In this document: in pieces, positions 10,901 to 64,000 of the stretch
Position numbering within the stretch: the first letter of the stretch is position 1
Layout of the letters: every line of letters begins with the position of its first letter
Assembly: GCA_977016875.1 (NCBI GenBank)
Contig: CDRNST010000085.1
Span: forward strand, 2,852,001 to 2,916,000
DNA length: 64,000 bases
Direction: 5' to 3'
Origin: Pavona decussata
Taxonomy: Eukaryota
The notes under the pieces: generated by a model
What the model saw: only the letters and a program-made list of their open reading frames with translations
Databases searched by the model: none
Told to the model about the DNA's origin: nothing
Position numbers and translations under genes: made by a program

Positions 10901-13900
10901 CAGATCAAAATTTTACTTCTGTGAATAAACATGCGACGTTGGATGGTGTTGTTTATTTCTTTTCATTTGGGTTTAAAAAGCTTCTGACACTGTTCAAGGA
11001 CCACTTATAATATTTTTTGTGTTGAACACGTACCATGGTACAGCGGATACAACTTTTTTCTTGAAGGTAAACGAAAAAGAGTGATTATAAATTCGATGAA
11101 GAGAAATTTACTTAAAAGACTTTCTTAGGTGTGAAAGCGGCCAAGGTAATTAACAATGAGCTTAACTTCCAATAAATTATGGCATTTTCAAAGCAAAAGA
11201 ATCTGTTTCTTTTCTGATGTCTCTTATCTCTAGAAAAAAATGCTCCAAGAGCGCTGCTGCGTTCTCTTTCATGGCTCTCTTTCATGGCTCAGGTTTGTCA
11301 ATTTGATCTTCTTGTCGTAGCGCCGAACGGCAGACTCGGTAATTTTTACAGTATTCTTCGCCGCTTGTTTTCTTTTAAAGTTCTAAATCTCCACAGCATC
11401 TAAACTAGGATAACAATGCTCTGTTTTCGTTTTTTGGTACTAGTACGGACAGTGACGTCATAACCAAAATTTTTCGCATACATAGGTTTAGCAAAATCTC
11501 TTATCAACGGGACTCCGCGTGCGCGCCTTCGGCGCGCGGAGCTACGCTAAAAAACAGGCGAAATTTATCACATCGAAAGTTTATTTTATATCTTGACAAC
11601 CATTTACAGCAATATGGCTTACAATATCTCATTTTTAAGTGTATAAAATAGGCTTCTCAGAAAAAAAACAACAAATACCATCATAGAAACTCATCACTTT
11701 TATAAAAAAAATCTTATAATAACAAAAATTAACCAAAACATTTTATTACATCTGAGGAAAATGTGTTTTGTTTCAAAGTGATATGTAATAGAACAAAGAA
11801 TTGAAAAAGAAAATGATTCCTCTCGTGTTAGCAACATTTCCTGAAAATTTGGCTGGAAAAGAAGAAATCTAAAATTAGTTATGATTTGTTTTTTTGCCAT
11901 GCAATCGCATCAAAACACAGTCAAGAAATGCAAAGCTCCATAGGAACATAACAGCTGATCAAATTACGGGACCAATTTCGCTTGGGCAAATAAAAAAGAT
12001 GCTTTCAGCCAAAATTATTGAGCTTTTTACCAACAGATACGAATTCATGATCAATATTCAAGAACTAGACGAGATATTAAACGCAAAAAAGGTAACCTGA
12101 GGAGTATATCCTCGCATTTCAAAACCATGTGCTCGATGGCGTCGCTTCAGCTCGAAACATGTCAAACGGTTTACCAGAAGATTTAACCGCCCATAACAAT
12201 AATCAGTATTTAATATAATTTAACTAACCTAAAAAGATACAGAACTGAATGCAAGGCTGGCACTACGGCAAAGGGCAGATTTATTAGTGGCCACTAATAA
12301 ATCTGCCCTTTGCCGTAGTGCCAGCCTTGCATTCAGTTCTGTATTTTCCCGTTCAAGTGACGCCTGACACGAGGTCTTTCACGAGAGAGATCCGGCAAAA
12401 TTACCAGCAAGTTTTAATTCCTGCGTTGTGTGGACCTCTGCATTCAAAAGTTTTTCTAAAAAAATAACCTGCAGCAAATCCAATTACGCTCTAAGTCCTT
12501 GAAGCTCACCTCACTGAATGTCAGCACGTTCAAAGTCCTCGAAGCTCGCCTCAACAACGTCAGCAAAACGTCCTTCCATCAACCTCGTTTCCTGGGAATG
12601 AGGTTGGGATCCCATGTGACAAACCGTTCTAATTGACACATTTTTCGCATTCTTATCGTTCTTGGTTGCAGAACAAAATTTTAATTTCCGGTTTCAGTGT
12701 CCCTGTGATAAACGTGGCGCGCACGCGTAATACGCAATCCGCTGGTAACTGTCAAGATTAGGGTTGCAGGNNNNNNNNNNNNNNNNNNNNNNNNNNNNNN
12801 NNNNNNNNNNNNNNNNNNNNNNNNNNNNNNNNNNNNNNNNNNNNNNNNNNNNNNNNNNNNNNNNNNNNNNNNNNNNNNNNNNNNNNNNNNNNNNNNNNNN
12901 NNNNNNNNNNNNNNNNNNNNTTCCGAGCTTGTCGGGGTGGTTTTTTGGGAGGTGTGAAACTGTTTGGGCGTTAAAATCAGTCTTGTTCACCTGGCTTGGT
13001 GTTTTCGAACGCATGAGCGCCATCTCGAAGAGATGACGTCATGAGGCAATTGCCAAATTGGCGAAGTGGATCCCGTGGCGTCGGGTAGAGCTGTGTTCGG
13101 CCTTCGAGTCCGGCCAGGGCAAAGAGCAAATTTCTTTTTCACCTCTTTTTCGAAAATCAACTAAAATAAAAGCTTAAAATTAAATTATAAAAAAAATGAA
13201 AAAAGTTCAAAGCTTTAGAAAATGTTTTTAAAGTTTTAAGAAAATTACATCAAATTTGACGGCATGCGAAAAAAGGTCGAAAAAAAAAATTTTGACATGG
13301 CGAAAAATTGAATGGTCCGTTTTAGATTAGTATGGACCTCATTAACTATGCCCCATTAAATGATTTCGAGTCTTGTAACTCAGCCAGTTTTAGAGGTATT
13401 GGCTGCAAGGGACAAAATGGTTGTTCAACTCCCCCGGAGTAGTGGCTCAAAAATGTTTTCGTCCTCCGTTTCTCGTCTTACTTTCAGTAAAATCTAAGCT
13501 AATAGACCTTTCTCACTCGGCGGCCATTTGAGTCTCAGGAGAATAAAAAGCTTTGTTTTCCACGGCTAGCCTCGCCCACACGTGAATTCAGTGCGAGGCT
13601 TGCCATGGAAAAACAAAGCTTTTATTCTCCTGAGACTCAACATGGCCGCCGAGTGAGAAAGGTCTATAGGCCATTTCCGAGTTGCTGTGAACCTCATTTT
13701 AAAAGCGAGGATAAGTGCTGAGTCTCTTCTGTTTGCATATGAATGAAAAACTAATTTCCATAATTATTATAAGGGCTTTGTACTTAGCCTCACTTTTAAA
13801 ATGAAATTCAAGGCAACTCGACAATAGCCTGTTCAGGTCAAATTAAGTCCTAGCTGGATCTTGTTTCCCGTAGTCAGTGTAAAATAGGTCATTCTGCAGC

Positions 13901-15339
13901 TATAGCGTCCCATTTTTGTTCTACCTAGACATAATCAATAAGAAATTTACCTTATTTGCCAACGAATTTTAGTGACAAATTGCTGTAAGGTGAAAAAAAG
14001 TAAGATGGTCAAATGACCAGGAGTAATTTGGTGAAAGGCTAATGCCCGACCCCCAGGATAGACAGTGTGGGAAAATGCCCCACTAATTCCTTGGAAAATG
14101 GGCACAGCTAGAATTGAATGATGCCTCTCTTTTTCCTGGCCTTCCCTCTTCTTCTGAAGGGAAGCAACACCGAAATTAAATACGCCAAAAGCTCCAACCA
14201 AATTGTACAAAAAATGTAAAAAGCACCGCATGTTTATGTGAAGGAAGTTTATTTCCTGATTTATGGCTGTATTGAAGTATTTTAGCATTTTGACAAAATA
14301 CTAAAAAGTATACAAAGTCTATAAATTGTCACTAGGATCATGCTATTGGATAGTTGTTGGGGATTTCTCTGATCAGGTTCTGACATCAATATTCCTGCAA
14401 AAAATAGCAGTCTTTCCTGGGAGGAGAAGGGGGAAGGGAAGGGCAGGGCAACCTGATCTCAGGTTAAAGACCATGACCCCAAGGTAACAAGGCTTACAAA
14501 AAAGTCTGGGGGAAGGGAGGGGGGCTAAGGGTAAACGTCGGCGTGATGCCGGTCCAAAATGCGGCTGAGGAAAAGCTATATTATTGTATTTTTGGATGAG
14601 TATGCTGACTGAAGGAAACCTTTTTCAGGTCTTTAATTGTCTCAGTTGGGCACGCAATCGACGATCATCATGCTTTATTAACTACCTACTATAAGGGACT
14701 CCTCAACAAAATGATCAAAAGCATAGTAAACAACAGACATTGAAAAGAAAGGTTCATAGCGGATTTTTTTCTTCATACAGATATCGATGAATGTTTGAGC
14801 TCAAACACGAACAATTGTCACGAGGATGCAGATTGTAGCAACACCGATGGGTCCTACAAATGCACTTGCCAAAGTGGCTTCAGTGGAGATGGTATTGTGT
14901 GCAAAGGTATATATCGTTAAGAGACGAAATTTGAACCATAAACGTAAATTTAACTGGAATATTTAATCAGTCGGCGACTTGTCTTAAGGACGGTGCCTAC
15001 TAATATCGAAGTATTTTTGCGCAGTTTATGACTGTGCGGGAAAAGCAGATCTTAGCAAGGGCTATGGAAATCCAAAAAGAAAATTGGGGGTAACCACGCA
15101 TTTTTTTAAAGATGATTAAGCAACAACTATTCTAAAAAACAGTAGATTACAAAGAAATGTATGGCGTTTTTTTCCAAATTGAAGCTTTATTATCCCTAAA
15201 AAAATGTATGGCTACCCCTAATTTCCTTTTTGGATACCAAAAGCACTTGCTATAAGTTTTGCTTTACCCGAATAGTTTTAAACAGCGCAAAAATATCCCT
15301 GTGTTAGTAACCACCAGCCATAGGAAACCCGAGTATCAC

Positions 15340-15378
<39 letters not shown>

Positions 15379-18300
15379 TCGTCCTTAAATCACTCTTTAT
15401 GACTGGCTACTAAATGAATCTCATGATCATAAACATCTGAGGTCCAACTAGATGTTGCAGGGAGTTTTAATCCTCCAGGGTCAGGGCAAGGTACTGTCTT
15501 AGATAAGCTACCTAAATATATGGTTTTTTAGCCGTTTTGGTCTGAAAAAGGTTACAGATTTTAACCATTTTGGCCTGAAAGTCTGAAAACGGGTATAGAT
15601 ATATTCTGAGGACCAGGTCTGAAAACCGATAAGAACGTTAGAGGCCAGGGGCCCCTTTGACGAAAGTCTCGGTAACTTACCGGACCCGATAAGTGTCTTT
15701 GGTGATCAATGTTTCTTAACAGAAGTCAAATTTGTTAGTTTTGGATACTAAATTTTAAAATCTTACAATTCCATGAAAACATATGCCTGTAATCACAGTG
15801 TAATTGATAAAAAAAAAACATTATAAAAGATACTTACCGGGACTTTCGAGAAACGGGTCCCACGTACCCAATGGTACCAGAAAAGCGCATAGTTTGGTCT
15901 GAGATAAGATCAGGGTTGGAAAACCAAGCCACACAAAAAAATCCGAGGAAAACCCCCTCCCCTGGCTTTAAACATGACATTACTTCAAAATGCAGAATTT
16001 CGTATGTTTTGTTTGTCATCAGATAACTAAACGCAATTTGGCCACCTTACTGTGTACAGTGTACGGTGGCCAAATTACCTTTAGTTATCAACTCTGTTGA
16101 TACAAGGAGTCATTAGGTTCCGCTCCCCACCGACGCCGCACCACAGTTTCTCTAGAAACTAAACCCCTTATGCATAATTGCGTGACTGAGGATCTTAGGA
16201 TGACGAAAGTTGATTAAACTGAAACATGAGTGATGAGCAGATGCTTATTTGCCAGACAAACTGTTTGCAAACAAAATGAATGTTCACAATATCAGAAACC
16301 ACCAGGAAGTACTTTAAGATAAGGTTATTCGCTTTTATTTTATGTAGATATCAATGAATGCCGAAACACGAATAACTGCCACCACGATGCAGATTGTAAA
16401 AACATTAAGGGGTCATATAACTGCACTTGTCGTAATGGGTTTACTGGAAATGGTACTACTTGTAACGGTACGTATAACCACAGTCGCAGAGATCGACGAA
16501 TGCACAAAGGCAATTAAAACTGCTCTTCATTTCTTAACTGATTTCAGGGCGCGAAACGTATGTGCTGCCAATTAATTGTACTCGTATCGCCATCTGTTTA
16601 GTACATCTGCCTCCATAAGTACGTATCAGTACAACCCACAGTTAATGTTTGAAGGACTCGAACCCATTTAAGTAGCAATTCTTGAAGGAAAAATGACGAA
16701 AACCTACTCAAACTACAAGTACCACCTCAAAAAATGTTCATAATGTCCTTTCATTAGCCCCATTTATTTCACGATACGTTTGAACAATCAAACCGTTCCT
16801 TAATAATAGAGTCAACAATATCAAACTTAATTGTAATTTTTCACAAAATGTATTCTGAAAAGATTTAGTAGAATATCAGTTTTTCGACGTGTGTTAATGT
16901 CTCCACGTTAAGGGAGATGTTGTTCTGAATTTGAATTTCCTTACCTTTTATTAGAAAGGTTCACTTTATGTTCATGACTTTTATATTTTACACCATTTAA
17001 GAGTTTCTTTATTCTTTTGATTACTTTCTGGAAAAGTGGCTAGTTCTCGTAGAAAAGGAGAGATCTCGGAGATTGCGGATGCAGGACGGCGGCTTTGCAA
17101 AAAACAAAACATCACCACTAAGGTCTCATGCCTTATGACGTCATCGTCTCATTCTGCGGACCTGAAAGGAATATATGTTGGGTGTATTGTAATCCCTCAA
17201 TAAAAAGCGTTCTCTTTTTAACGATGACAGTGGTGCATACGACATTGGGTACATGGGTGTTAATCTGTACTGAGCCACAATTTAAATTCAAATCATCATG
17301 TTCAGTCAATAGAGGAAATTCACTGATAATGATACAAAATGAAAGAAAATTAAGGTATAAATAATAACCAACACTAAGGATCACAGGGCCTATTTCCACT
17401 TTTATCTTGGTAATTTGTTAGTTTGCATGGCAAAAATAAATCACTAAATTACAAACAAGGAGAATGACTTTTTATAACCAACCTATCTTCTTCCAGATGT
17501 TGATGAATGCAATACACCTGGTGCCAATAACTGCTCATCAAACGCAACTTGTGTTAATAAACCTGGATCGTTTAAATGTCTCTGTAAACCCGGGTACGCT
17601 GGAAATGGCGTGAATTGCACTGGTGAGTAATAATAACAACCGCTTTTAGAGAAAGAAGTTAAGCTAAAGAAGTAAGGAAAAAGGTTTTTTGACATTTCGC
17701 GCTCTTTCATAGAGATCGAAGAATGCCCTACGGCAAGTAAAGACGGCTTATTGCCGTACTGCCGATATACTCTGTGCAGAAAAAGATCGCGGCTGTGAAT
17801 TTTACCACCATGCGAACCTAACACAGCCATTAGCACATAGATAGCCGTATTTAATTTTTGGGAAATTTGTCCCTGTACTACCAACGTTGTGCATGGTAGG
17901 TTTGAAATTTTGAAAATTTTTCTTTCCGTTTTTATGAGTGTTTTAAGGGTTAGGGTTCATACGCTTGGAATTATGGATTAATCTTAAAGTCGCCACCTTT
18001 TTCGGTACGGTAGCATGGATTAATTCTTGGTTTTTTTTTTTTTTTTTTAATTTTCGAAGATACCTATGACACGAAGTCGTTTACCGCTGGGTTCTAAAAT
18101 AAAAAGAACTTAATTAAACTAAAACTAAAGACTAGCTACGATATAGAAATAGAACAAAACCATTAAATAAACAAATAAATAAATAAATACATCAATAAAT
18201 TAACTAATTAATCAATTGTTTTCCCTGCCATTTTCTTCGTTTTTTTTTTTCGACTTTATTTCTTTGTAATTTATTACTTTGCATGCCAAAGCTAAATTGC

Positions 18301-21300
18301 AAACACTGAGCAATGATAACCAACTGATTTTCTTCCAGATGTAGATGAATGCAGTACACCCGGTGCCAATAACTGCTCGTCAAGCGCAACCTGTGTTAAT
18401 AAACCTGGATCGTTTGAATGTCTCTGCAGTAAACCTGGGTACGCTGGAAATGGTATGAATTGCACTGGTGAGTAATAATAACAACCGCTTTTAGAGGAAA
18501 AAGGGAAACTAAAGAAAGCAGGAAATTTTTTTGGGCTTGGTTATGTTGTCATTGTCCGTCCGTCCGCATGCAGTATCACAGGAAAACCAATGGTAATTGT
18601 ACACACAGTGAACGCAACAAATTCACGTATTCGTTGAATAAATCAACTAATGTGGAAATAAGAAAAAGAGAGAGAGAGAGAAAGAAAACGAGAAAGCAGG
18701 CGTGAAACCTGGCCAAGAAAAAAATTGGCCAAGTACCATGCCTGTAATCACGGTGTAATTGGTAAAAAAAAAAAAACTATAAAAGACACTTACCGGGACT
18801 TTCGAGAAATGGGTCCCACGTACCCAATGGTACCAGAAAAGTGCATAGTTTAGTCTGAGATAAGGTCAGGGTTAGAAAACCAAACCACACAAAAAAATCC
18901 AATGAAATCCCCTCCCCTTGCTTTAAACATGTAACATTACTTCAAAATGCAGAATTTCGTATGTCTTGTTTTGTCATCAGATCTTTTTACCGATGACAGT
19001 GGTACATGCGACATTGGGTGCATGGGTGTTAATCTGTACTGATCTACCATTTAAATTCAAATCATCTGTTCAGTCAATGGAGGAAATTCACAGATAATGA
19101 TCCAAAAGGAAAGAAAATTAACGGATACATGATCACCAACACTAAGGATCACAGGGCCACGAAAGGAAATAAAACTGATGTCAGCAATTAACGGGTACTT
19201 CACAAACAAATCACTACTTTTGCTTGCTCTAGATATCGATGAATGCACAAGTGTCAACATGAACAACTGCCACCAGCATGCCGATTCTAACAACCAGACA
19301 CGCTGCTGTCTGTCTGTGATGAACTTTTTTAGTTTCCTTTTTAATAAAAAGGGACCACTGTAATAGGCCTTAGCTGTATTTTGTTCCCACTCTTTTCGCT
19401 TCTTTTTTCCACTTTGTATCTTTGTAACTTATTAGTTTGCATGGCAAAAATAAATGACTAATTTAAAAACAAGGAGAATGACTAATTATAACCAACTGAT
19501 TTTCTTCCAGATTTAGATGAATGCAATACGCCTGGTGCCAATAACTGCTCATCAAACGCAACTTGTGTTAATAAACCTGGATCGTTTAAATGTCTCTGTA
19601 AACCTGGGTACGCTGGAAATGGCGTGAATTGCACTGGTGAGTAATAATAACAACCGCTTTTAGAGGAAGAAGTTAAGCTAAAGAAGTAAGGAAAAAAGTT
19701 TTTTGACATTTCGCACTCTTTCATAGAGATCGAAGAATGCTCTACGGCAAGTAAAGACGACTTATTGCCGGACTGCCAATATACTCTGTGCAGAAAAAGA
19801 TCGCGGCTGTGAATTTTACCACTATACCATGCGAACCTAACACAGCCATTAGCACATAGATAGCAATATTTAATGTTTGGAAAATTTGTCCCTGAACTAC
19901 CAACGTTGTGCATGGTAGGTTTGAAATTTGCAGAATTTTTCTTTCCGTTTTTATGAGTGTTTTAAGGGTTAGGGTTCATACGCTTGGAATTATGGATTAC
20001 TCTTAAAGTCGCCACCTTTTTCGGTACGGTGGCATGGATTAATTCTTTTTTTTTTTTTTTTTTTTTCTAATTTTCGAAGATACCTATGATACGAAGTCGT
20101 TTACCGCTGGGTTCTAGAATAAAAAGAACTTAATTAAACTAAAACTAAAGACTAGCTACGATATAGAAATAGAACAAAACCATTAAATAGACAAATAAAT
20201 AAATAAATACATCAATAAATTAACTAATTAATCAGTTGTTTTCCCTGCCATTTTCTTCGTTATTTTTTTTTTCGACTTTATTTCTTTGTAAATTATTAGT
20301 TTGCATGCCAAAGCTAAATTGCAAACACTGAGCAATGATAACCAACTGATGTTCTTCCAGATGTAGATGAATGCAATACACCCGGTGCCAATAACTGCTC
20401 GTCAAGCGCAACCTGTGTTAATAAACCTGGATCGTTTGAATGTCTCTGCAGTAAACCTGGGTACGCTGGAAATGGCGTGAATTGCACTGGTGAGTAATAA
20501 TAACAACCGCTTTTAGAGGAAAAAGGGAAACTAAAGAAAGCAGGAAATTTTTTTGGGCTTGGTTATGTTGTCACTGCTCGTCCGTCCGCATGCAGTATCA
20601 CAGGAAAACCAATGGTAATTGTACACACAGTGAACGCAACAAATTCACGTATTCGTTGAATTTGTCAACTAATGTGGAAATAAGAGAAAGAGAGAGAGAG
20701 AAAGAAAACGAGAAAGCAGGGGTGAAACCTGGCCAAGAAAAACATTGGCCAAGTACCATGCCTGTAATCACGATGTAATTGGTTAAAAAAAAAAACACTT
20801 TAAAAGACACTTACCGGGACTTTCGAGAAACGCGTCCCACGTACCCAATGGTACCAGAAAAGTGCATAGTTTGGACTGAGATAAGGTCAGGGTTAGAAAA
20901 CCAAACCACACAAAAAAAATCCGAGGAAAATCCCCTCCCCTTGCTTTAAACATATAACATTACTTCAAAATGCACAATTTCGTATGTCTTGTTTTGTCAT
21001 CAGATCTTTTTACCGATGACAGTGGTACATGCGACATTGAGTGCATGGGTGTTAATCTGTACTGACCTACCATTTAAATTCAAATCATCTGTTCAGTCAA
21101 TAGAGGAAATTCACTGATAATGATCCAAAAGGAAAGAAAGTTAAGGTATACATGATCACCAACACTAAGGATCACAAGGCCACGAAAGGAAATAAAACTG
21201 ATATCAGCAATTAACGGGTACTTCACAAACAAATCACTACTTTTGCTTGCTCTAGATATCGATGAATGCACAAGTGTCAACATGAACAACTGCCACCAGC

Positions 21301-24300
21301 ATGCCGATTCTAACAACCAGACACGCTGCTGTCTGTCTGTGATGAACTTTTTTAGTTTCTTTTTTAATAAAAAGGGACCACTGTAATTGGCTGTAGCTGT
21401 ATTTTGTTCCCACTCTTTTCGCTTCTTTTTTCCACTTTGTATCTTTGTAACTTGTTAGTTTGCATGGCAAAAATAAATGACTAATTTAAAAACAAGGAGA
21501 ATGACTAATTATAACCAACTGATTTTCTTCCAGATTTAGATGAATGCAATACACCTGGTGCCAATAACTGCTCATCAAACGCAACTTGTGTTAATAAACC
21601 TGGATCGTTTAAATGTCTCTGTAAACCTGGGTACGCTGGAAATGGCGTGAATTGCACTGGTGAGTAATAATAACAACCGCTTTTAGAGGAAGAAGTTAAG
21701 CTAAAGAAGTAAGGAAAAAAGTTTTTTGACATTTCGCACTCTTTCATAGAGATCGAAGAATGCTCTACGGCAAGTAAAGACGACTTATTGCCGGACTGCC
21801 AATATGCTCTGTGCAGAAAAAGATCGCGGCTGTGAATTTTACCACTATACCATGCGAACCTAACACAGCCATTAACACATAGATAGCAATATTTAATGTT
21901 TGGAAAATTTGTCCCTGTACTACCAACGTTGTGCATGGTAGGTTTGAAATTTGCAGAATTTTTCTTTCCGTTTTTATGAGTGTTTTAAGGGTTAGGGTTC
22001 ATACGCTTGGAACTATGGATTCATCTTAAAGTCGCCACCTTTTTTGATACGGTGGCATGGATTAATTCTTGTTTTTTTTTTTTTTTTCTAATTTTCGAAG
22101 ATACCTATGATACGAAGTCGTTTACCGCTGGGTTCTAGAATAAAAAGAACTTAATTAAACTAAAACTAAAGACTAGCTACGATATAGAAATAGAAAAAAA
22201 CCATTAAATAGACAAATAAATAAATAAATACATCAATAAATTAACTAATTAATCAGTTGTTTTCCCTGCCATTTTCTTCGTTTTTTTTTTTTTTTCGACT
22301 TTATTTCTTTGTAAATTATTAGTTTGCATGCCAAAGCTAAATTGCAAACACTGAGCAATGATAACCAACTGATTTTCTTCCAGATGTAGATGAATGCAAT
22401 ACACCCCGTGCCAATAACTGCTCGTCAAGGGCAACCTGTGTTAATAAACCTGGATCGCTTGAATGTCTCTGTAAACCTGGGTACGCTGGAAATGGCGTGA
22501 ATTGCACTGGTGAGTAATAATAACAACCGCTTTTAGAGGAAAAAGGGAAACTAAAGAAAGCAGGAAATTTTTTTGGGCTTGGTTATGTTGTCACTGTCCG
22601 TCCGTCCGCATGCAGTATCACAGGAAAACCAATGTTAATTGTACACACAATGAACGCAACAAATTCACGTATTCGTTGAATATGTCAACTAATGTGGAAA
22701 CAAGAGAAAGAGAGAGAGAGAAAGAAAATGATAAAGCTGGCCAAGAAAAACATTGGCCAAGTACCATGCCTGTAATCACGATGTAATTGGTTAAAAAAAA
22801 AATTTATAAAAGACACTTACCGGGACTTTTGAGAAATGGGTCCTACGTACCCAATGGTACCAGAAAAGTGCATAGTTTGGACTGAGATAAGGTCAGGGTT
22901 AGAAAACCAAACCACACAAAAAAATCTGAGGAAAATCCCCTCCCCTTGCTTTCAACATATAACATTACTTCAAAATGCAGAATTTTGTATGTCTTGTTTT
23001 GTCATCAGATCTTTTTACCGATGACAGTGGTACATGCAACATTGGGTGCATGGGTGTTAATCTGTTCTGAGCTACCATTTAAATTCAAATTATCTGTTCA
23101 GTCAATGGAGGAAATTCACTGATAATGATCCAAAAGGAAAGAAAGTTAAGGTATACATGATTACCAACACTAGGGATCACAGGGCCACGAAAGGAAATAA
23201 AACTGATATCAGCAATTAACGGGTACTTCACAAACAAATCACTACTTTTGCTTGCTCTAGATATCGATGATACACAAGTGTCAACATGAACAACTGCCAC
23301 CAGCATGCCGATTCTAACAACCAGACACGCTGCTGTCTGTCTGTGATGAACTTTTTTAGTTTCTTTTTTAATAAAAAGGGACCACTGTAATTGGTTGTAG
23401 CTGTATTTTGTTCCCACTCTTTTCGCTTCTTTTTTCCACTTTGTATCTTTGTTACTTGTTAGTTTGCATGGCAAAAATAAATGACTAATTTAAAAACAAG
23501 GAGAATGACTAATTATAACCAACTGATTTTCTTCCAGATTTAGATGAATGCAATACACCTGGTGCCAATAACTGCTCATCAAACGCAACTTGTGTTAATA
23601 AACCTGGATCGTTTAAATGTCTCTGTAAACCTGGGTACGCTGGAAATGGCGTGAATTGCACTGGTGAGTAATAATAACAACCGCTTTTAGAGGAAGAAGT
23701 TAAGCTAAAGAAGTAAGGAAAAAGGTTTTTTGACATTTCGCGCTCTTTCATAGAGATCGAAGAATGCCCTACGGCAAGTAAAGACGACTTATTGCCGGAC
23801 TGCCAATATACTCTGTGCAGAAAAAGATCGCGGCTGTGAATTTTACCAATATACCATGCGAGCCTAACACAGCCATTAGCACATAGATAGCCGTATTTAA
23901 TTTTTGGAAAATTTGTCCCTGTACTACCAACGTTGTGCATGGTAGGTTTGAAATTTGCAGAATTTTTTTTTCCGTTTTTATGAGTGTTTTAAGGGTTAGG
24001 GTTCATACGCTTGGAATTATGGATTAATCTTAAAGTCGCCACCTTTTTCGGTACAGTGGCATGGATTAATTCTTGTTTTCTTTTTTTTTTTTTTCTAATT
24101 TTCGAAGATACCTATGATACGAAGTCGTTTACCGCTGGGTTCTAGAATAAAAAGAACTTAATTAAACTAAAACTAAAGACTAGCTACGATATAGAAATAG
24201 AACAAAACCATTAAATAGACAAATAAATAAATAAATACATCAATAAATTAACTAATTAATCAATTGTTTTCCCTGCCATTTTCTTCGTTTTTTTTTTTTT

Positions 24301-27300
24301 TTCGACTTTATTTCTTTGTAATTTATTAGTTTGCATGCCAAAGCTAAATTGCAAACACTGAGCAATGATAACCAACTGATTTTCTTCCAGATGTAGATGA
24401 ATGCAATACACCCGGTGCCAATAACTGCTCGTCAAGGGCAACCTGTGTTAATAAACCTGGATCGTTTGAATGTCTCTGTAAACCTGGGTACGCTGGAAAT
24501 GGCGTGAATTGCACTGGTGAGTAATAATAACAACCGCTTTTAGAGGAAAAAGGGAAACTAAAGAAAGCAGGAAATTTTTTGGGCTTGGTTATATTGTCAC
24601 TGTCCGTCCGTCCGCATGCAGTATCACAGGAAAACCAATGGTAATTGTACACACAATGAACGCAACAAAATCACGTATTCATTGAATATTTCAACTAACG
24701 TGGAAACAAGAGAAAGAGAGAGAGAGAGAAAAAAAACGAGAAAGCAGGTGTGAAACCCCAGAGCAACTTAGAGAACGTTTAAACAGGCGAAATATCATTT
24801 AAAAACAAACCATGTTGTGAGCAACTCGCAAGTCGCCTAGTTAAATGCATTCTTGCAAGGAGCTGTCGATAATTTTCCATACAATTTTAACATATTTCAA
24901 ACTATACACAGGTACTTAAACCGTCGCCATACGACAAATATTCCAGAAATTCGTGGACAAAATTAACTTTCTAAGGTTCCCATAGTTATGAATTGTTTTG
25001 AACATTTTGTGTTGCACTTGTGTAAATACTAATTCACTCGCCGCACGTATTTGTAAACACGCACCACAACAACAACCAAACATTATTTTTCCTGTATATC
25101 TTTTTTTGGTTTATTAAGAGACCATAAATATTTCTGTACTTGGGATATCTACAGAGTAACTAAGAATTTTCAAATACATTTGTCTGAAAAAACATCACGC
25201 GGTAGCCAACTCGTGAGCCGTTTACAAATTAAATGCTTTCTTCCGGGAAACAATCTATAATTTTCCCTATCTTACGTATTTCAAGCTTTGCACAGATACA
25301 TTCATCGTTTCCATAGGATTAATATTTATGGAGAATTTGACTGTTTCATCCACGACTATTTTATAGTCTCAAACGTCATCGGAATAAAGCACTGTGGTCT
25401 CGCGCGATCGACGAGAACAGCTGATTCAAAATGTTTTCCTCTGACGCGTAGACAGTTTGATGCGTAAGCAGTTTGCTTCATATACACTAAAAATATACAT
25501 AACTCCCGAAAGGAAGTGGAATTTGAAAGATTATTATGTTCGTATAATAAACAGACTTATATAAATGCTGTTTAAGTGCTACTATGACGAAATTCGCATC
25601 TTTGTAATCTAAGCCATTTTAAAGCGTTAACAAGTAGTTTGTACGAGAAGAAGAATGCTGTTTACTTTTTTCAAATATCTCTTTTTGCTCCAGAGATATT
25701 CAAGTTTTTAAAATATGAAAATTAGCCAAGTGATGACCTCATAAACCGAATTTTGATCAAATATCATGAAAAAAGATATCTCAGCCAATTTGTATTAGAA
25801 ATGATTGATTCTTTGCACTGACATTGTACTAGATGCGCTGCATAATATGAGCTTATCAGTTTTGTTACCTTGGCAACATACTGGGTTCCAGTCCTCCCTA
25901 ATAAGGCTTTGCTGGTCACCTTTGGCGTTCTATTTTGATATTTGCCAATGGTGCCTCATCTGCATGATCCAGCAAGCGTATAAACATGTTGGGTCGAGTT
26001 CGTGGCCTTGTTAAATGTTTTTCAAGCTGGAAATCACTAAAATATTGAAATCAGTTTGGAGGTGACTGGAAAAGAGTGAGTTACCATGGGAACCGAATTT
26101 TTTATAGCCGTAGGTGTATTGTCCTTAGAACTATTAGCCTGCCAGGTTTCAATGGTCTCTGCTGTAAATTGACTGAGATAGCTCTATTTATATACTTGAT
26201 GTTATATTGAGTTGAAAGTATGACGTCATCAGGCCTCTCATTTATATATTTCACACATTTTTCAAACTTAAATATCTCCGGAACCAATGCAGATATTTAG
26301 AAACGGTAAACGGCGTTTTTAATTTTTCCTAGAATGCTATGTGATAAACCTAAAAATTCAAGAGGTAAAAATGTGATCATAGTAGCACTTTAAAAAGGAA
26401 TTGTGGAGCTCCGCTTTTAGACTTGACTAAATATATATATATACACTCGATTGCAAAAACGTTGACACCTAAAAAGCATAAACCATGAACGATGAGACCC
26501 AACGGATTTGTGGATAGTGTTTAAAAATTGGCCCTTGTTGGCCAACTTGACACTTTAAGGAAAGCTTGGACAGTTTCCATCATTCACCTCGTGCAACTTA
26601 TTTTGGTTATCAACCGTCGCACTAGAATAGAATATTATGCAAATAAATTAATTACACTTATATCCATAAAGCCATTTGGTCTCATCGTTCACGGTTTATG
26701 CTTTTTAGATGTCAACCTTTTTGCAATCGAGTGTGTATATATATATATATATATGAGTTCAAATTTACGCTTCAAAGAGACAGCATTTATGCTTCGTACA
26801 GACAAATTACACAGTAAATACGACACTGAAGTAATATTGCGGACTGACGCTTCGACAACCTGTGAGAAAGTCATTATCAGAGTCAAGAAACTTATGGTCA
26901 TCAGTAGATTGTATAAAGTCTCTGGTTATTGACCTGATTGGTCCACGAAGTCGAGATGTTATTGGTTGTCTGTCTGATGGTATTGGTTGCAAATGATTGG
27001 TGCGTTTCCATCCGTCTTTTGTCAGATGAAAATAAACTCTTGGTCTATTGTTAGTAAACTTAAATGATTTCTCTCGTTATTTGTTGATTTTAGTTTTACA
27101 ATTGCCCTTTGATTACTATTTGTTATTGTTGTTTTTTTAACAGGATGTCAAGCTGTAGGCGTAGCGGACAATAAAACGATACCAGATGATAGGATGAATG
27201 CAAGTTCATGGTATGCTGATAACGTTCTTCCATACTACGGTCGACTGAACGCATCCAGGGGCGGCGGAGCCTGGTGTCCTATAACACCAAGTGACCGATC

Positions 27301-61800: not shown

Positions 61801-63861
61801 AAAAATCCTGTTCCATTCAATTCCCACCCGAAATTTTCGAAAATTTCGTCGAATGGAAAGCGCCCTAGGTTTGGGTGTCTGCTGGAATAGGATATGATTG
61901 TCACTTGATTTTTGCCTTTATTTAAAACTATCATTTTTGATTCTTTGCCAGCATTTGGTTGCCCAATAATATTCTACACACAAAAACCACTGCTTCCAGA
62001 CAATAGCTGCTAGCATACAAGTACATCATGACAACGTCCAAAAATGGCAGCATGTAGGCAAAATGAAGTGAAACTCTGATTATGGCTTCCCCAATGCAAG
62101 CCTCACCTGTTGGCAGGTCTGTTGTCAGTTTCAGCTGCAGCAGCAGTGGATGCACCAGCAGCTGCCGATGGACCAGCACCAGCACCAGCACCTACTGCTC
62201 CTGTTCCACCACTGCTTCCTCTCGCCCACGCGCCATACCCTCTGCCGCCTGGTCCAAGAGAGATGTTTTCAGAATCCACAGGGCGCTGTAAAAAATACAC
62301 TCATTTAGTTCTGGTGTCAAATGGGCCTAATAATGCAAATTTATTTTTCAAAGAATTTGATTTTAGCAACAGTTCTAAGCCTGTGAAAAGTGAAAGCAAA
62401 TGTAAGACTTTGGTTATTTAAATATACACGACAAATATTGTTATTTAAAATATGGCAAGAGGGCAAAGAAAAATAGAAAAAAAACAGACAAAGCACTCTT
62501 TTAAAATATTTCCAGCACCAGTAGTTATTCTTTTTTTGTCTTACAGAGCACCAAACACTATGTTTGGATGTGGCCATGTTGAAAGGCGAAAGTTTAAATT
62601 GTTTCACAATGCAGAAAGCCACACCTGAAACTTTAATGGAACAAGGCAGCAAGGCACAAATAGAACAGTCAAGCAATTCTACTCACCTTAATGTTTTGGA
62701 ACTTCTTTGGGTCTACACTAACATTCCTGGGCCCTCTGCCCACAGTGGTCCAGGTTTCATCGGCCTGGGGAATGGATCCTGGTCGAGGACTGTCACGACC
62801 GCCCATGTTCCCTGAACAAGAGCAAAAAAAAAAAAAAAAAAGACGGTTGTTTAGAGCAAAAGCACTGCAGGAAATCACCACACACCATGCTAACATACCA
62901 GCTTAGAGACTGAATAATCCACAGGAAAGAAGGAAAACTATAACAATCAATTTGTAGTCTATTCCCTGAAGAGCACAAAAAACGGTTGTTTAGAGCAAAA
63001 GCACTGTAGGAAATCACCACACACAATGTTATCATACCAGCTTAGAGACTGAATAATCCACAGGAAAGAAAGAAAACTATTACATTCAATTTGCAGTCTA
63101 TTTTTTCATGTACATCGGGCTTGTTGGAAGAGGGAGGGCACCTATTAACCCCTGTCTAGCCTGGTGTGGGTTTTTTTGTTCTCTTCATGAGCTTTGGGGT
63201 ACAGGACAGTGAAACCTGTATATAACAGCCACCCTCTGGACTTTACAAACTGAACTGGCCACTTGAAAAATTCAGGACTGAAACTGGCCTCTTAATAGAA
63301 AATGGTTGCTGAATACAGGACTGTTTTATACAGGTTCCACTCTACAGTAAATAGACAGAAAAAAAAGCAGAGGGAAACATTATTAAGTGTTACTTTATAG
63401 ATAAAAAATTTTCAAATTCAATAATTATTTCATAACGAGTGGTATAGTTGGGGGCAAGGGGATTATTAGAAAGGAGCCCTTATATAGGGAGGGAGCTAAA
63501 TAGAGTAAAATACTATGGCATAATCAGGACTTGAACAATTGGCTCCACAAGGAAAATATGTGTAGCTGTTAATTAATTATGACCACATTTTTATAACCAA
63601 ATGGGATCCACTGTACTCGCCTCTACTAGATAGTTTCTTGTCTTGTTTAGCCATCTGTATCATCATCTGTGTCTTCTTAGCTTGGTCAGCAGCCTCTTTG
63701 TGAATCTGATCAATGGTCTTGGGGTTGTTGTCCTCCCGGCGAGGCACCCAGTCATTGTTACGTAAATCCACAATGTCCTGCATCATGAATCTCACACGAG
63801 ACGAGGTTATCCTTGCCTGGATTATTTTGTTGATCTGATGGAAGTACTGGTCAACTCTTGG
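53903..63861 (-). CDS. EIF4G: Eukaryotic translation initiation factor 4 gamma (eIF4G1/3-like), 3' 12 exons; 5' part lies beyond the window
   Basis: Exons 63861-63621, 62811-62687, 62285-62107, 61367-61187, 60637-60449, 59930-59758, 57706-57502, 56987-56889, 56325-56197, 55505-55421, 54852-54706, 54081-53903 splice in frame. Motifs: [31 protein letters not shown] (MIF4G end), SIVDEYL..DVKEA and [13 protein letters not shown] (MA3), [26 protein letters not shown] (W2). Confidence 0.95.
54706..54852 (-). CDS. EIF4G: eIF4G exon, W2
   Basis: [49 protein letters not shown]|gtatag. Confidence 0.9.
55015..55346. mobile_element. MITE containing compound (GAT)n(AAT)n(CAT)n and (AAAT)n microsatellites and a LINE 3'-end fragment
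   Basis: TIR-like CACGGCGGCCATGTTGGAG / CTCCAATATGGCCGCCGC; internal repeats seen directly. Confidence 0.7.
55421..55505 (-). CDS. EIF4G: eIF4G exon, W2
   Basis: [28 protein letters not shown]|gtaatt. Confidence 0.88.
56197..56325 (-). CDS. EIF4G: eIF4G exon, W2 start
   Basis: [33 protein letters not shown]|gtaagt. Confidence 0.88.
56889..56987 (-). CDS. EIF4G: eIF4G exon
   Basis: [33 protein letters not shown]|gtatgt; 99 nt, phase 0-0. Confidence 0.85.
57502..57706 (-). CDS. EIF4G: eIF4G exon, MA3
   Basis: [34 protein letters not shown]|gtgagt. Confidence 0.9.
58267..58853. mobile_element. TTAA-flanked (Kolobok-like) MITE with long imperfect TIRs
   Basis: TTAA-AGTGCCTATGAAGC ... GCTTCATAGGCACT-TTAA; inner TGACGTCACGTTGGTGCCAA / TTGGCACCAACGTGACGTCA. 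Confidence 0.88.
59758..59930 (-). CDS. EIF4G: eIF4G exon, MA3
   Basis: [58 protein letters not shown]|gtatgt. Confidence 0.9.
60060..60178. mobile_element. Small Harbinger-like MITE
   Basis: GGGCCCAGTTGCTCGAAGCATGGTTAGCGCTAACC ... GGTTAGCGCTAACCATGCTTCGAGCAACTCAGCCC. Confidence 0.85.
60449..60637 (-). CDS. EIF4G: eIF4G exon, MA3 start
   Basis: [33 protein letters not shown]|gtgggt. Confidence 0.9.
61187..61367 (-). CDS. EIF4G: eIF4G exon, linker
   Basis: (R)[25 protein letters not shown]|gtttgt. Confidence 0.88.
61549..61865. mobile_element. PIF/Harbinger MITE with 3-bp TAG target duplication
   Basis: TAG-GGGCGCTTTCCATTC ... GAATGGAAAGCGCCC-TAG; related remnant at ~52925-53150. Confidence 0.88.
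62107..62285 (-). CDS. EIF4G: eIF4G exon, Gly/Ala-rich linker
   Basis: [32 protein letters not shown]|gtgagg. Confidence 0.88.
62687..62811 (-). CDS. EIF4G: eIF4G exon, linker
   Basis: [42 protein letters not shown]|gtgagt. Confidence 0.88.
63206..63341. mobile_element. Short Tigger-like MITE
   Basis: CAGTGAAACCTGTATATAACAG ... CTGTTTTATACAGGTTCCACT. Confidence 0.65.
63621..63861 (-). CDS. EIF4G: eIF4G exon, MIF4G C-terminal part
   Basis: cag|[61 protein letters not shown]; probable GC donor AG|GCGAGT. Confidence 0.9.
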
Positions 63862-64000
63862 CTGGAAATAACAAACATAAATTTTAAAAAATACTGCTAA
63901 GCACAGTTACACTGTAAACTGGCTTGGAACAAGACAAACTCCAGACAAGAGAAGGTAGATTTTACTGCTTAACTGGCTCCTTCCTCTTGTTTCATTTTTC

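Follow-up and report, generated by a model that had tools for sequence, protein, structure and literature searches.

The duplication of symmetrical phase 1-1 module exons is the accepted textbook origin of long arrays of epidermal growth factor (EGF) domains, and in most such arrays the introns have long since diverged. The arrays of calcium-binding EGF (cbEGF) domains in fibrillin, LTBP and Notch arose in this way; their duplications are ancient and their introns unrelated. In the LPA gene, the copy number of the kringle IV type 2 (KIV-2) repeat is highly polymorphic, and more than 40 protein isoforms result (PMC6314250, PMC4378929). In coral genomes, tandem duplication is pervasive (PMC10236652). 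Here, we describe a gene of the coral Pavona decussata in which a cassette of two EGF exons has been copied in tandem between older EGF exons and a discoidin (F5/8 type C) domain. The gene lies on the forward strand of a stretch of 64,000 nucleotides, hereafter called the window (GenBank assembly GCA_977016875.1, contig CDRNST010000085.1, positions 2,852,001 to 2,916,000). The contig is 5 Mb long and the whole assembly comprises 602 Mb in 1180 contigs; all coordinates below are those of the window.

An earlier reading, made from the sequence alone, had seen in this locus an array of EGF exons that is still being amplified. We find that the tandem amplification is real and comparatively recent and that it concerns a two-exon cassette within one gene, between its older EGF exons and its discoidin domain. 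We consider it quite probable that the locus is an intragenic tandem array of a ~2.0-kb cassette in about four copies, with the history and the protein that we propose below.

A tandem array of EGF exon pairs

A six-frame scan for the cysteine pattern of EGF domains returned exactly ten EGF exons in the window, all of them on the plus strand, and eight of these ten belong to a head-to-tail array (17213-24757, plus strand). The families of direct repeats that make up the array are spaced 2004-2023 bp from start to start and span 17.2-24.8 kb. To define the units, we ran a BLAST search with unit 2 as the query against the whole window. The array consists of three full units, a fourth one of 1.2 kb and a diverged leading piece. 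Unit 2 is located at 19511-21533; unit 1 (17497-19510) is 96.1% and unit 3 (21534-23537) 96.5% identical to it, and the partial unit 4 (23538-24757), which holds the first 1219 nt (unit positions 1-1219), is 96.7% identical. At the right, the array ends at 24757 and the sequence is unrelated from 24758 onward. At the inter-unit junction, ~27 nt of a dispersed element come after the unit end (...GTGAAACC). At the left, a leading partial unit (17213-17496), made of the blocks that we call Y and Z, is 89-91% identical to the units and lacks the segment with the relic exon described below. A further block, X (15783-16024), is detached from the rest and is 90-91% identical to unit positions 1248-1495. 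Units and blocks are all on the plus strand.

The identity between pairs of units is 95.9-97.7%, introns included, and each full pair differs by 47-81 substitutions as well as by indels. A repeat of this kind is far beyond chance, and the tandem array of EGF exon pairs is thus confirmed as an observation. The sequence-only reading had spoken of four ~2-kb units with near-identical introns. Of this, the tandem array stands, with 3.6 units instead of four full ones; the likeness of the introns is real as well, but they carry 2.4-4.1% mismatches and indels.

Each unit contains one exon of type A and one of type B. The A exons are all 126 nt long: A1 (17497-17622), A2 (19511-19636), A3 (21534-21659) and A4 (23538-23663). 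Among the B exons, B1 (18339-18467) and B2 (20361-20489) have 129 nt, and B3 (22384-22509) and B4 (24391-24516) have 126 nt. All eight exons lie on the plus strand, are of phase 1-1 and have the same splice sites (acceptor ...ttccag/AT, donor ...G/gtgagtaa). That each unit pairs one A with one B exon of phase 1-1 had been proposed before, and the cassette is indeed frame-neutral (126 or 129 nt between ag/AT and G/gt). The features of symmetrical modules are found together here: lengths that are a multiple of three, ends in the same phase, adjacent copies and homologous introns.

The eight exons all match the EGF_CA profile (PF07645) beyond its cut-off of 27 bits, with 48.3 bits for the A exon and 42.2 bits for the B exon. 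All eight array exons have the six cysteines and the motif D-V/L-D-E-C ... C-V-N-K-P-G-S-F-x-C-L-C, except that B3 alone has L for F and so has lost the conserved aromatic residue. We recovered the variants that the sequence-only reading had listed. Residue 2 of the type A exons is V in A1 (DVDEC) and L in A2-A4 (DLDEC); in type B, a Ser insertion (GCA) is found in B1 and B2, a change from S to R in B3 and B4, and the changes from G to R and from F to L in B3. Furthermore, B1 shows two changes that are not in that list, N to S and V to M.

Between B and the next A, every full unit contains the relic of an EGF exon of type E, the type of the older exons upstream of the array (19217-19294, 21240-21317 and 23260-23321; in the unit annotation ~19233-19294, ~21256-21317 and ~23260-23321). 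Of this exon, the acceptor and ~62 nt at the 5' end are kept, the third Cys codon has changed to Ser, and beyond this point homology is lost and the 3' half is gone. In unit 3 the relic has an extra 1-nt deletion. Since the truncation is common to all copies, the death of this exon preceded the amplification of the cassette.

The intron between A and B harbours an element of ~240 bp that resembles a short interspersed nuclear element (SINE). It is found at unit positions 265-522, that is, at ~19775-20032 in unit 2 and at the equivalent place in each unit, and it has more than 1500 candidate copies genome-wide that are 75-80% identical. A second dispersed element, of ~100 bp (18718-18818), is situated at the inter-unit junction. 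Apart from these two pieces, the assembly has the unit at this locus only, and we therefore rejected the idea that the unit as such is a mobile element. No RNA family was found in the unit in Rfam at E <= 0.1, the SINE-like element included. Non-allelic homologous recombination between flanking transposon copies is unsupported as the origin of the array: the element at the internal junction has no copy at the right edge (24758 onward). Antisense frames of 123-159 aa over the A exons, as well as frames in the introns, match no Pfam family, and we treated them as chance frames that were copied with the unit.

Age and history of the array

Three layers older than the units can be recognised at the locus. 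At the nucleotide level, the exons of type E are ~72-73% alike, and the introns that flank A and B are 72-91% alike. The leading copy (X, Y and Z) is set apart from the spacers of all three full units at 31 of 524 sites. These three spacers have 5-12 private changes each, and the derived sites that they share are few and conflicting (3/3/1). Furthermore, the informative sites support different groupings in different parts of the unit: eight sites group units 1 and 4 against units 2 and 3 (unit positions 187-782), and three sites and the Ser indel group units 1 and 2 against units 3 and 4 (unit positions 897-1171). From this mosaic it follows that the units exchanged segments after they had been copied. 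The sequence-only reading had invoked unequal crossover; past exchange between units is indeed evident, in the form that either crossover or gene conversion would give. We also see that the identity rises in one step from 89% to 96% exactly at the acceptor of A1, which suggests that the first, original cassette was overwritten from the A exon onward.

We propose the following history for the array. An old duplication would have given rise to the A/B pair. A first duplication of the cassette would have come next, of which only the left edge, with its identity of 89-91%, would survive. A later burst of copying, or else homogenisation by unequal exchange, may then have led to the units at 96-98%, and further crossover or conversion would have left the mosaic sites. 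The first steps of this history are tentative, since the blocks at the left edge are in the order X-E2-Y-Z (E2 being one of the two older EGF exons), in contrast to X-Y-relic-Z in the units.

The similarity of the units would say nothing about their youth if the array were old and its copies had been kept alike by concerted evolution, either through conversion or through unequal crossover. Several of the observations can be read in this way: the leading edge is far more diverged than the core, as if only the interior repeats had been homogenised, the informative sites form a mosaic, and an EGF domain of the same type, with the motif 'NTPGANNC', is present in a gene of another organism (see below), so that the module itself is old. 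On the other hand, the spacers of units 1-3 look star-like, with more private than shared changes, and one recent ancestor accounts for this equally well. We regard an old array under concerted evolution as a rather unlikely explanation, if one to be taken seriously, and prefer that of a comparatively recent amplification.

How recent the amplification may be can be judged from other samples. We compared positions 14700-19510 with Logan contigs from two samples that carry the same species label (X2 and X3) and from two presumed RNA runs (X10 and X17). In the single-copy flank, X2 differs from the assembly at 14 of 1161 nt (1.2%) and X3 at 8 of 1267 nt (0.6%). The divergence between the units is several-fold above this allelic level, and the amplification, while recent, is therefore probably older than the current alleles. 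In X2 and X3, 16 of the 19 single-letter unit differences that were checked are letters of unit 2, 3 or 4 of the assembly; the same is true for an insertion (+ACTAT) and a 3-nt deletion, and the remaining three differences (18384, 18391 and 18416) are letters of the A exon.

The contig depths, which are means per contig and not copy numbers, can be set beside these letters. The contigs of the single-copy flank have a depth of 18-22 in X2 and of 28-35 in X3. For the contig of the type of units 2 and 3 (17625-17996/18085) the depth is 51 in X2 and 86 in X3, that is, 2.5-2.7 times the single-copy flank in both samples. At position 18552 in X2, the letter of unit 1 has a depth of 19.2 and the letter of units 2-4 a depth of 59.7 (~1:3), the flank being at ~20. 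Because the unit-specific letters are present in X2 and X3, with depths that fit about four copies, the array looks established and not newly arising. The idea of an amplification in progress thus gains no support: the units differ by 2.4-4.1%, compared to ~0.6-1.2% for the local alleles, and the same unit-specific letters are seen in two other samples.

The same data bear on the question of whether the array is an artefact, produced by falsely duplicated haplotypes or by an over-expanded repeat. The heterozygosity of coral genomes is high, and their assemblies are known to suffer from allelic duplications (PMC10236652); moreover, it was a single assembly that we examined. However, units that differ from each other by tens of substitutions and by indels argue against such an artefact, as does the fact that the pattern predicted by a false duplication, in which unit 1 equals unit 3 and unit 2 equals unit 4, is seen at only 1 of 12 informative sites. 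The array is also located inside a 5-Mb contig. Finally, the letters and depths in X2 and X3 fit about four copies and for this reason speak against mis-assembly, both in the raised depth of the contig of the type of units 2 and 3 and in the ratio at 18552. We conclude that an artefact is highly improbable. A contig of X2 looked like a hybrid, with 19487 joined to 18316; we rejected it as a rearrangement, as here an exon of the type A2-A4 is aligned on B1, the compared stretch ending at 19510.

A real array of this kind could also vary in length. It could be a length-polymorphic coding variable-number tandem repeat, or else a source of isoforms, and a ladder of stalk lengths would then arise between colonies or by variable inclusion of the exons, for which their identical splice sites would give scope. 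Unequal exchange would find a good substrate in four 2-kb repeats that are 96-98% identical, the mosaic sites testify to exchange in the past, and any number of exons keeps the frame, all of them being of phase 1-1. The ratios of unit to flank depth, ~3.4-3.9 in X2 and 1.5-5.5 in X3, differ between the samples, which is a weak hint in the same direction from values that are not copy numbers. Against this, no splice joints were reported over these exons, and the unit-specific letters in both other samples fit the content of the assembly. Variation in length, between colonies or between transcripts, is hence possible, and we find it the less probable outcome.

The predicted protein and constraint on the gene

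The exons were searched singly, and the model of the protein follows from exon phases and domain content. Upstream, there are two EGF exons of the older type on the plus strand, E1 (14781-14906, 126 nt; EGF_3 1.1e-13, EGF_CA 7.3e-11) and E2 (16348-16467, 120 nt), both of phase 1-1 and with EGF_CA scores of 42.6 and 39.1 bits, respectively, above the cut-off of 27. Downstream, discoidin exon 1 (27144-27460, plus strand) is entered at phase 1 and left at phase 0, and matches positions 12-90 of the profile PF00754 (2e-14, 54.2 bits, cut-off 28.2). Discoidin exon 2 (30696-30836, plus strand) is coding up to 30833, with the stop codon at 30834-30836; it matches positions 81-127 of the same profile with 21.4 bits, which taken alone is under the cut-off. 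Beyond these two discoidin exons, no other exons homologous to those of the relatives were found in the window 3' of B4.

The candidate for exon 1 (8550-8718, plus strand) begins with the first ATG of its open frame and ends at a phase 1 donor (AAG/GTAAGA); an alternative phase-1 donor is present within the exon after 8670. The N-terminus that it encodes is short and basic and leads into ~27 hydrophobic residues, with a maximal Kyte-Doolittle mean over 19 residues of 3.27, and this is the sole upstream exon with an ATG that combines a hydrophobic stretch with a strong phase-1 donor. With this exon, the lengths of the 13 exons add up to 1884 nt, or 628 codons, in one frame from ATG to stop. None of the 13 exons is disrupted in the assembled haplotype; the splice sites and the 60 EGF cysteines are likewise complete, and the reading frame is intact.

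The window has two runs of N, at 5696-5889 (194 bases) and at 12771-12920 (150 bases), the second of which falls into the presumed intron between exon 1 and E1. In the intron between E1 and E2 (14860-16300) we see repeats of very high copy number, with a summed contig depth of 10^4-10^5, compared to ~20-35 for single-copy sequence; sharp edges of these repeats are found near 14984, 15105, 16062 and 16102.

The product of the gene would be a protein of ~628 residues with a signal anchor at the N-terminus, a rod made of ten tandem EGF domains, each matched by Pfam as the calcium-binding type, and one C-terminal discoidin domain at its tip, in other words a membrane-anchored protein composed of an EGF rod and a discoidin head. 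The sequence of exon 1 fits the type II (signal-anchor) pattern, with the link between this exon and the gene being inferred only. At the junctions of the A and B exons the linker is a single residue (C-T-D-x-D-E-C), and one-residue linkers of this sort between cbEGF domains are typical of rigid, calcium-stiffened rods such as those of fibrillin. Eight of the ten EGF modules would have been added by the amplification, making the rod roughly five times as long, so that its main effect would be to set the distance of the discoidin head from the membrane.

One of the older exons carries a stop codon in the other samples. At 16418 in E2, a change from T to A turns codon 24 from TAT into TAA, and the Tyr that is lost is the conserved aromatic residue. 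This is the sole form in X2 (depth 21.6 of 21.6) and accounts for about half of the depth in X3 (18 of 37.6). The 1.2 kb surrounding E2 occur only once in the assembly (the match that ranks next is <=78% identical), and the contig with the stop is therefore an allele and not a paralogue. As E2 is an exon of 120 nt and of phase 1-1, skipping it would keep the frame; otherwise, the E2 stop is a common loss-of-function allele. Taken together with the relic exons, the stop allele points to loss of modules at this locus as well as gain, and the stalk thus seems to undergo a turnover of its EGF modules through birth and death.

Several points weigh against the locus as we read it. Exon 1 is a candidate that was assigned by sequence logic, and the 6-kb intron that follows it contains an N gap. 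In the presumed RNA runs X10 and X17, the depth is zero on E1 and E2, there are traces on A and B, and no splice joints were reported. In five of the six pairs of B exons, the nonsynonymous rate (dN) is at least as high as the synonymous rate (dS), with 1-6 differences per pair, too few for a test; this and the E2 stop allele could mean that the constraint on the gene is weak. To these points come the order of the blocks at the left edge, the fact that the depths are averages over contigs and the ratios of unit to flank depth in X3, which are inconsistent.

Some of these points would also be expected if the gene were decaying or dispensable, with the array as a neutral structural change that has no role in tuning the protein. 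The stop allele in E2, the dN of the B exons along with the loss of the aromatic residue in B3, and the two presumed RNA runs, in which no RNA cover was found apart from the traces on A and B, are all in line with decay, and redundancy is plausible given the at least 110 members of the discoidin family. However, the assembled haplotype is intact throughout. In the A exons dN is lower than dS (again with too few differences for a test), and the symmetrical E2 could be skipped, by which the stop would be bypassed. We therefore think a decaying gene unlikely and keep to the predicted rod with a discoidin head.

One may go further and combine the stop allele with a variable array. In such a naturally variable stalk, the number of A/B cassettes would vary from colony to colony, the stop in E2 would be rescued by skipping, and rods of graded lengths would be the outcome. 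We offer this as a speculation with a low chance of being right. The locus is also of practical use as a marker: should colonies vary in copy number or in the E2 stop, it would provide a direct test of what rod length does for a discoidin receptor in a coral.

Relatives and known systems

A library search with HMMER, using discoidin exon 1, yielded 2652 relatives. The closest single-domain relatives (P0046 and P0099) end a few residues past the motif CLRVEI, as does the present gene, and in another relative (P0141) cbEGF repeats immediately precede a discoidin domain of the same kind. The open reading frame of the discoidin exon (27194-27469) was also found exactly (P0009) and with two residue changes (P0151), in both cases on a pair of ENA contigs, with lengths of up to 1.6 and 2.5 Mb; further long-contig assemblies of this species, or of a very close relative, therefore exist.

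The discoidin exon is part of a very large family in this genome, for which we count at least 110 matches (E <= 1e-10). Many of them form a dense cluster on the same contig, ~1 Mb upstream of the window (1.66-1.97 Mb), and these paralogues are 50-61% identical to the exon of the present gene. For six of the nearest discoidin paralogues we viewed the 20 kb upstream (8 kb for the sixth): four are without an EGF exon, one has a single EGF exon of type E and one has two unrelated EGFs. As the paralogues have no or few upstream EGF exons, the long A/B array is particular to the present gene. Elsewhere in the window, the exons of an eIF4G-like gene are found on the minus strand (53900-64000), with the Pfam domains W2, MA3 and a weak MIF4G; this gene runs past the right end of the window.

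The module type itself is found on a metagenome contig (L022, Ga0126336_10019911), which on its reverse strand (137-2926) has a PAN/apple-like frame, one EGF and three cbEGF exons with the motif 'NTPGANNC'. These three exons have 76-83% nucleotide identity to A and B, are of phase 1-1 and lie 385-515 bp apart, and their introns are mutually unlike. The contig shows that the module type predates the amplification, and it gives a picture of such an array after its introns have diverged.

With respect to architecture, EDIL3 (Del-1) and MFGE8 (lactadherin) resemble the coral gene in the placement of EGF-like repeats ahead of a C-terminal F5/8 type C domain within an extracellular protein. The vertebrate proteins, however, are secreted by way of a cleaved signal peptide and have 2-3 EGFs, with an RGD in the second of them, and two discoidin domains, whereas in the coral gene ten cbEGF exons are combined with a single discoidin domain, which is followed by the stop, and with a predicted signal anchor. 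We therefore do not assign the gene to the EDIL3/MFGE8 family; its architecture differs and its discoidin exon is nearest to a large family of coral type.

The exons themselves are of the kind known from fibrillin, LTBP and Notch, with one EGF per symmetrical phase 1-1 exon, the motif D-x-D-E-C and one linker residue after the sixth cysteine. The difference is that the introns of the coral array are still 96-98% identical and the steps of duplication can be read directly. The mechanism is an ordinary one, and the locus a neat new instance of it. With the junction, the older edge, a dead exon that hitch-hiked with the unit and the tracts of exchange all visible, it is a clear worked example.

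In form, the closest parallel among well-studied systems is the LPA KIV-2 repeat: in both genes a multi-kb unit of two exons is repeated head to tail and in frame, each copy adds modules to the protein, and the copies are near-identical including their introns. On the other hand, the LPA unit is 5.5-5.6 kb long and encodes one kringle over two exons, whereas the coral unit has 2.0 kb and two exons, each of which encodes a whole EGF domain. The coral units are also more diverged (2.4-4.1%), and the polymorphism of LPA has been demonstrated, while the coral array is known from one assembly and from contigs. If the stalk were indeed variable, the coral gene would be an invertebrate counterpart of LPA KIV-2, one in which the birth of modules (A and B), their death (the relic exon) and their bypass (E2) come together at a single locus.

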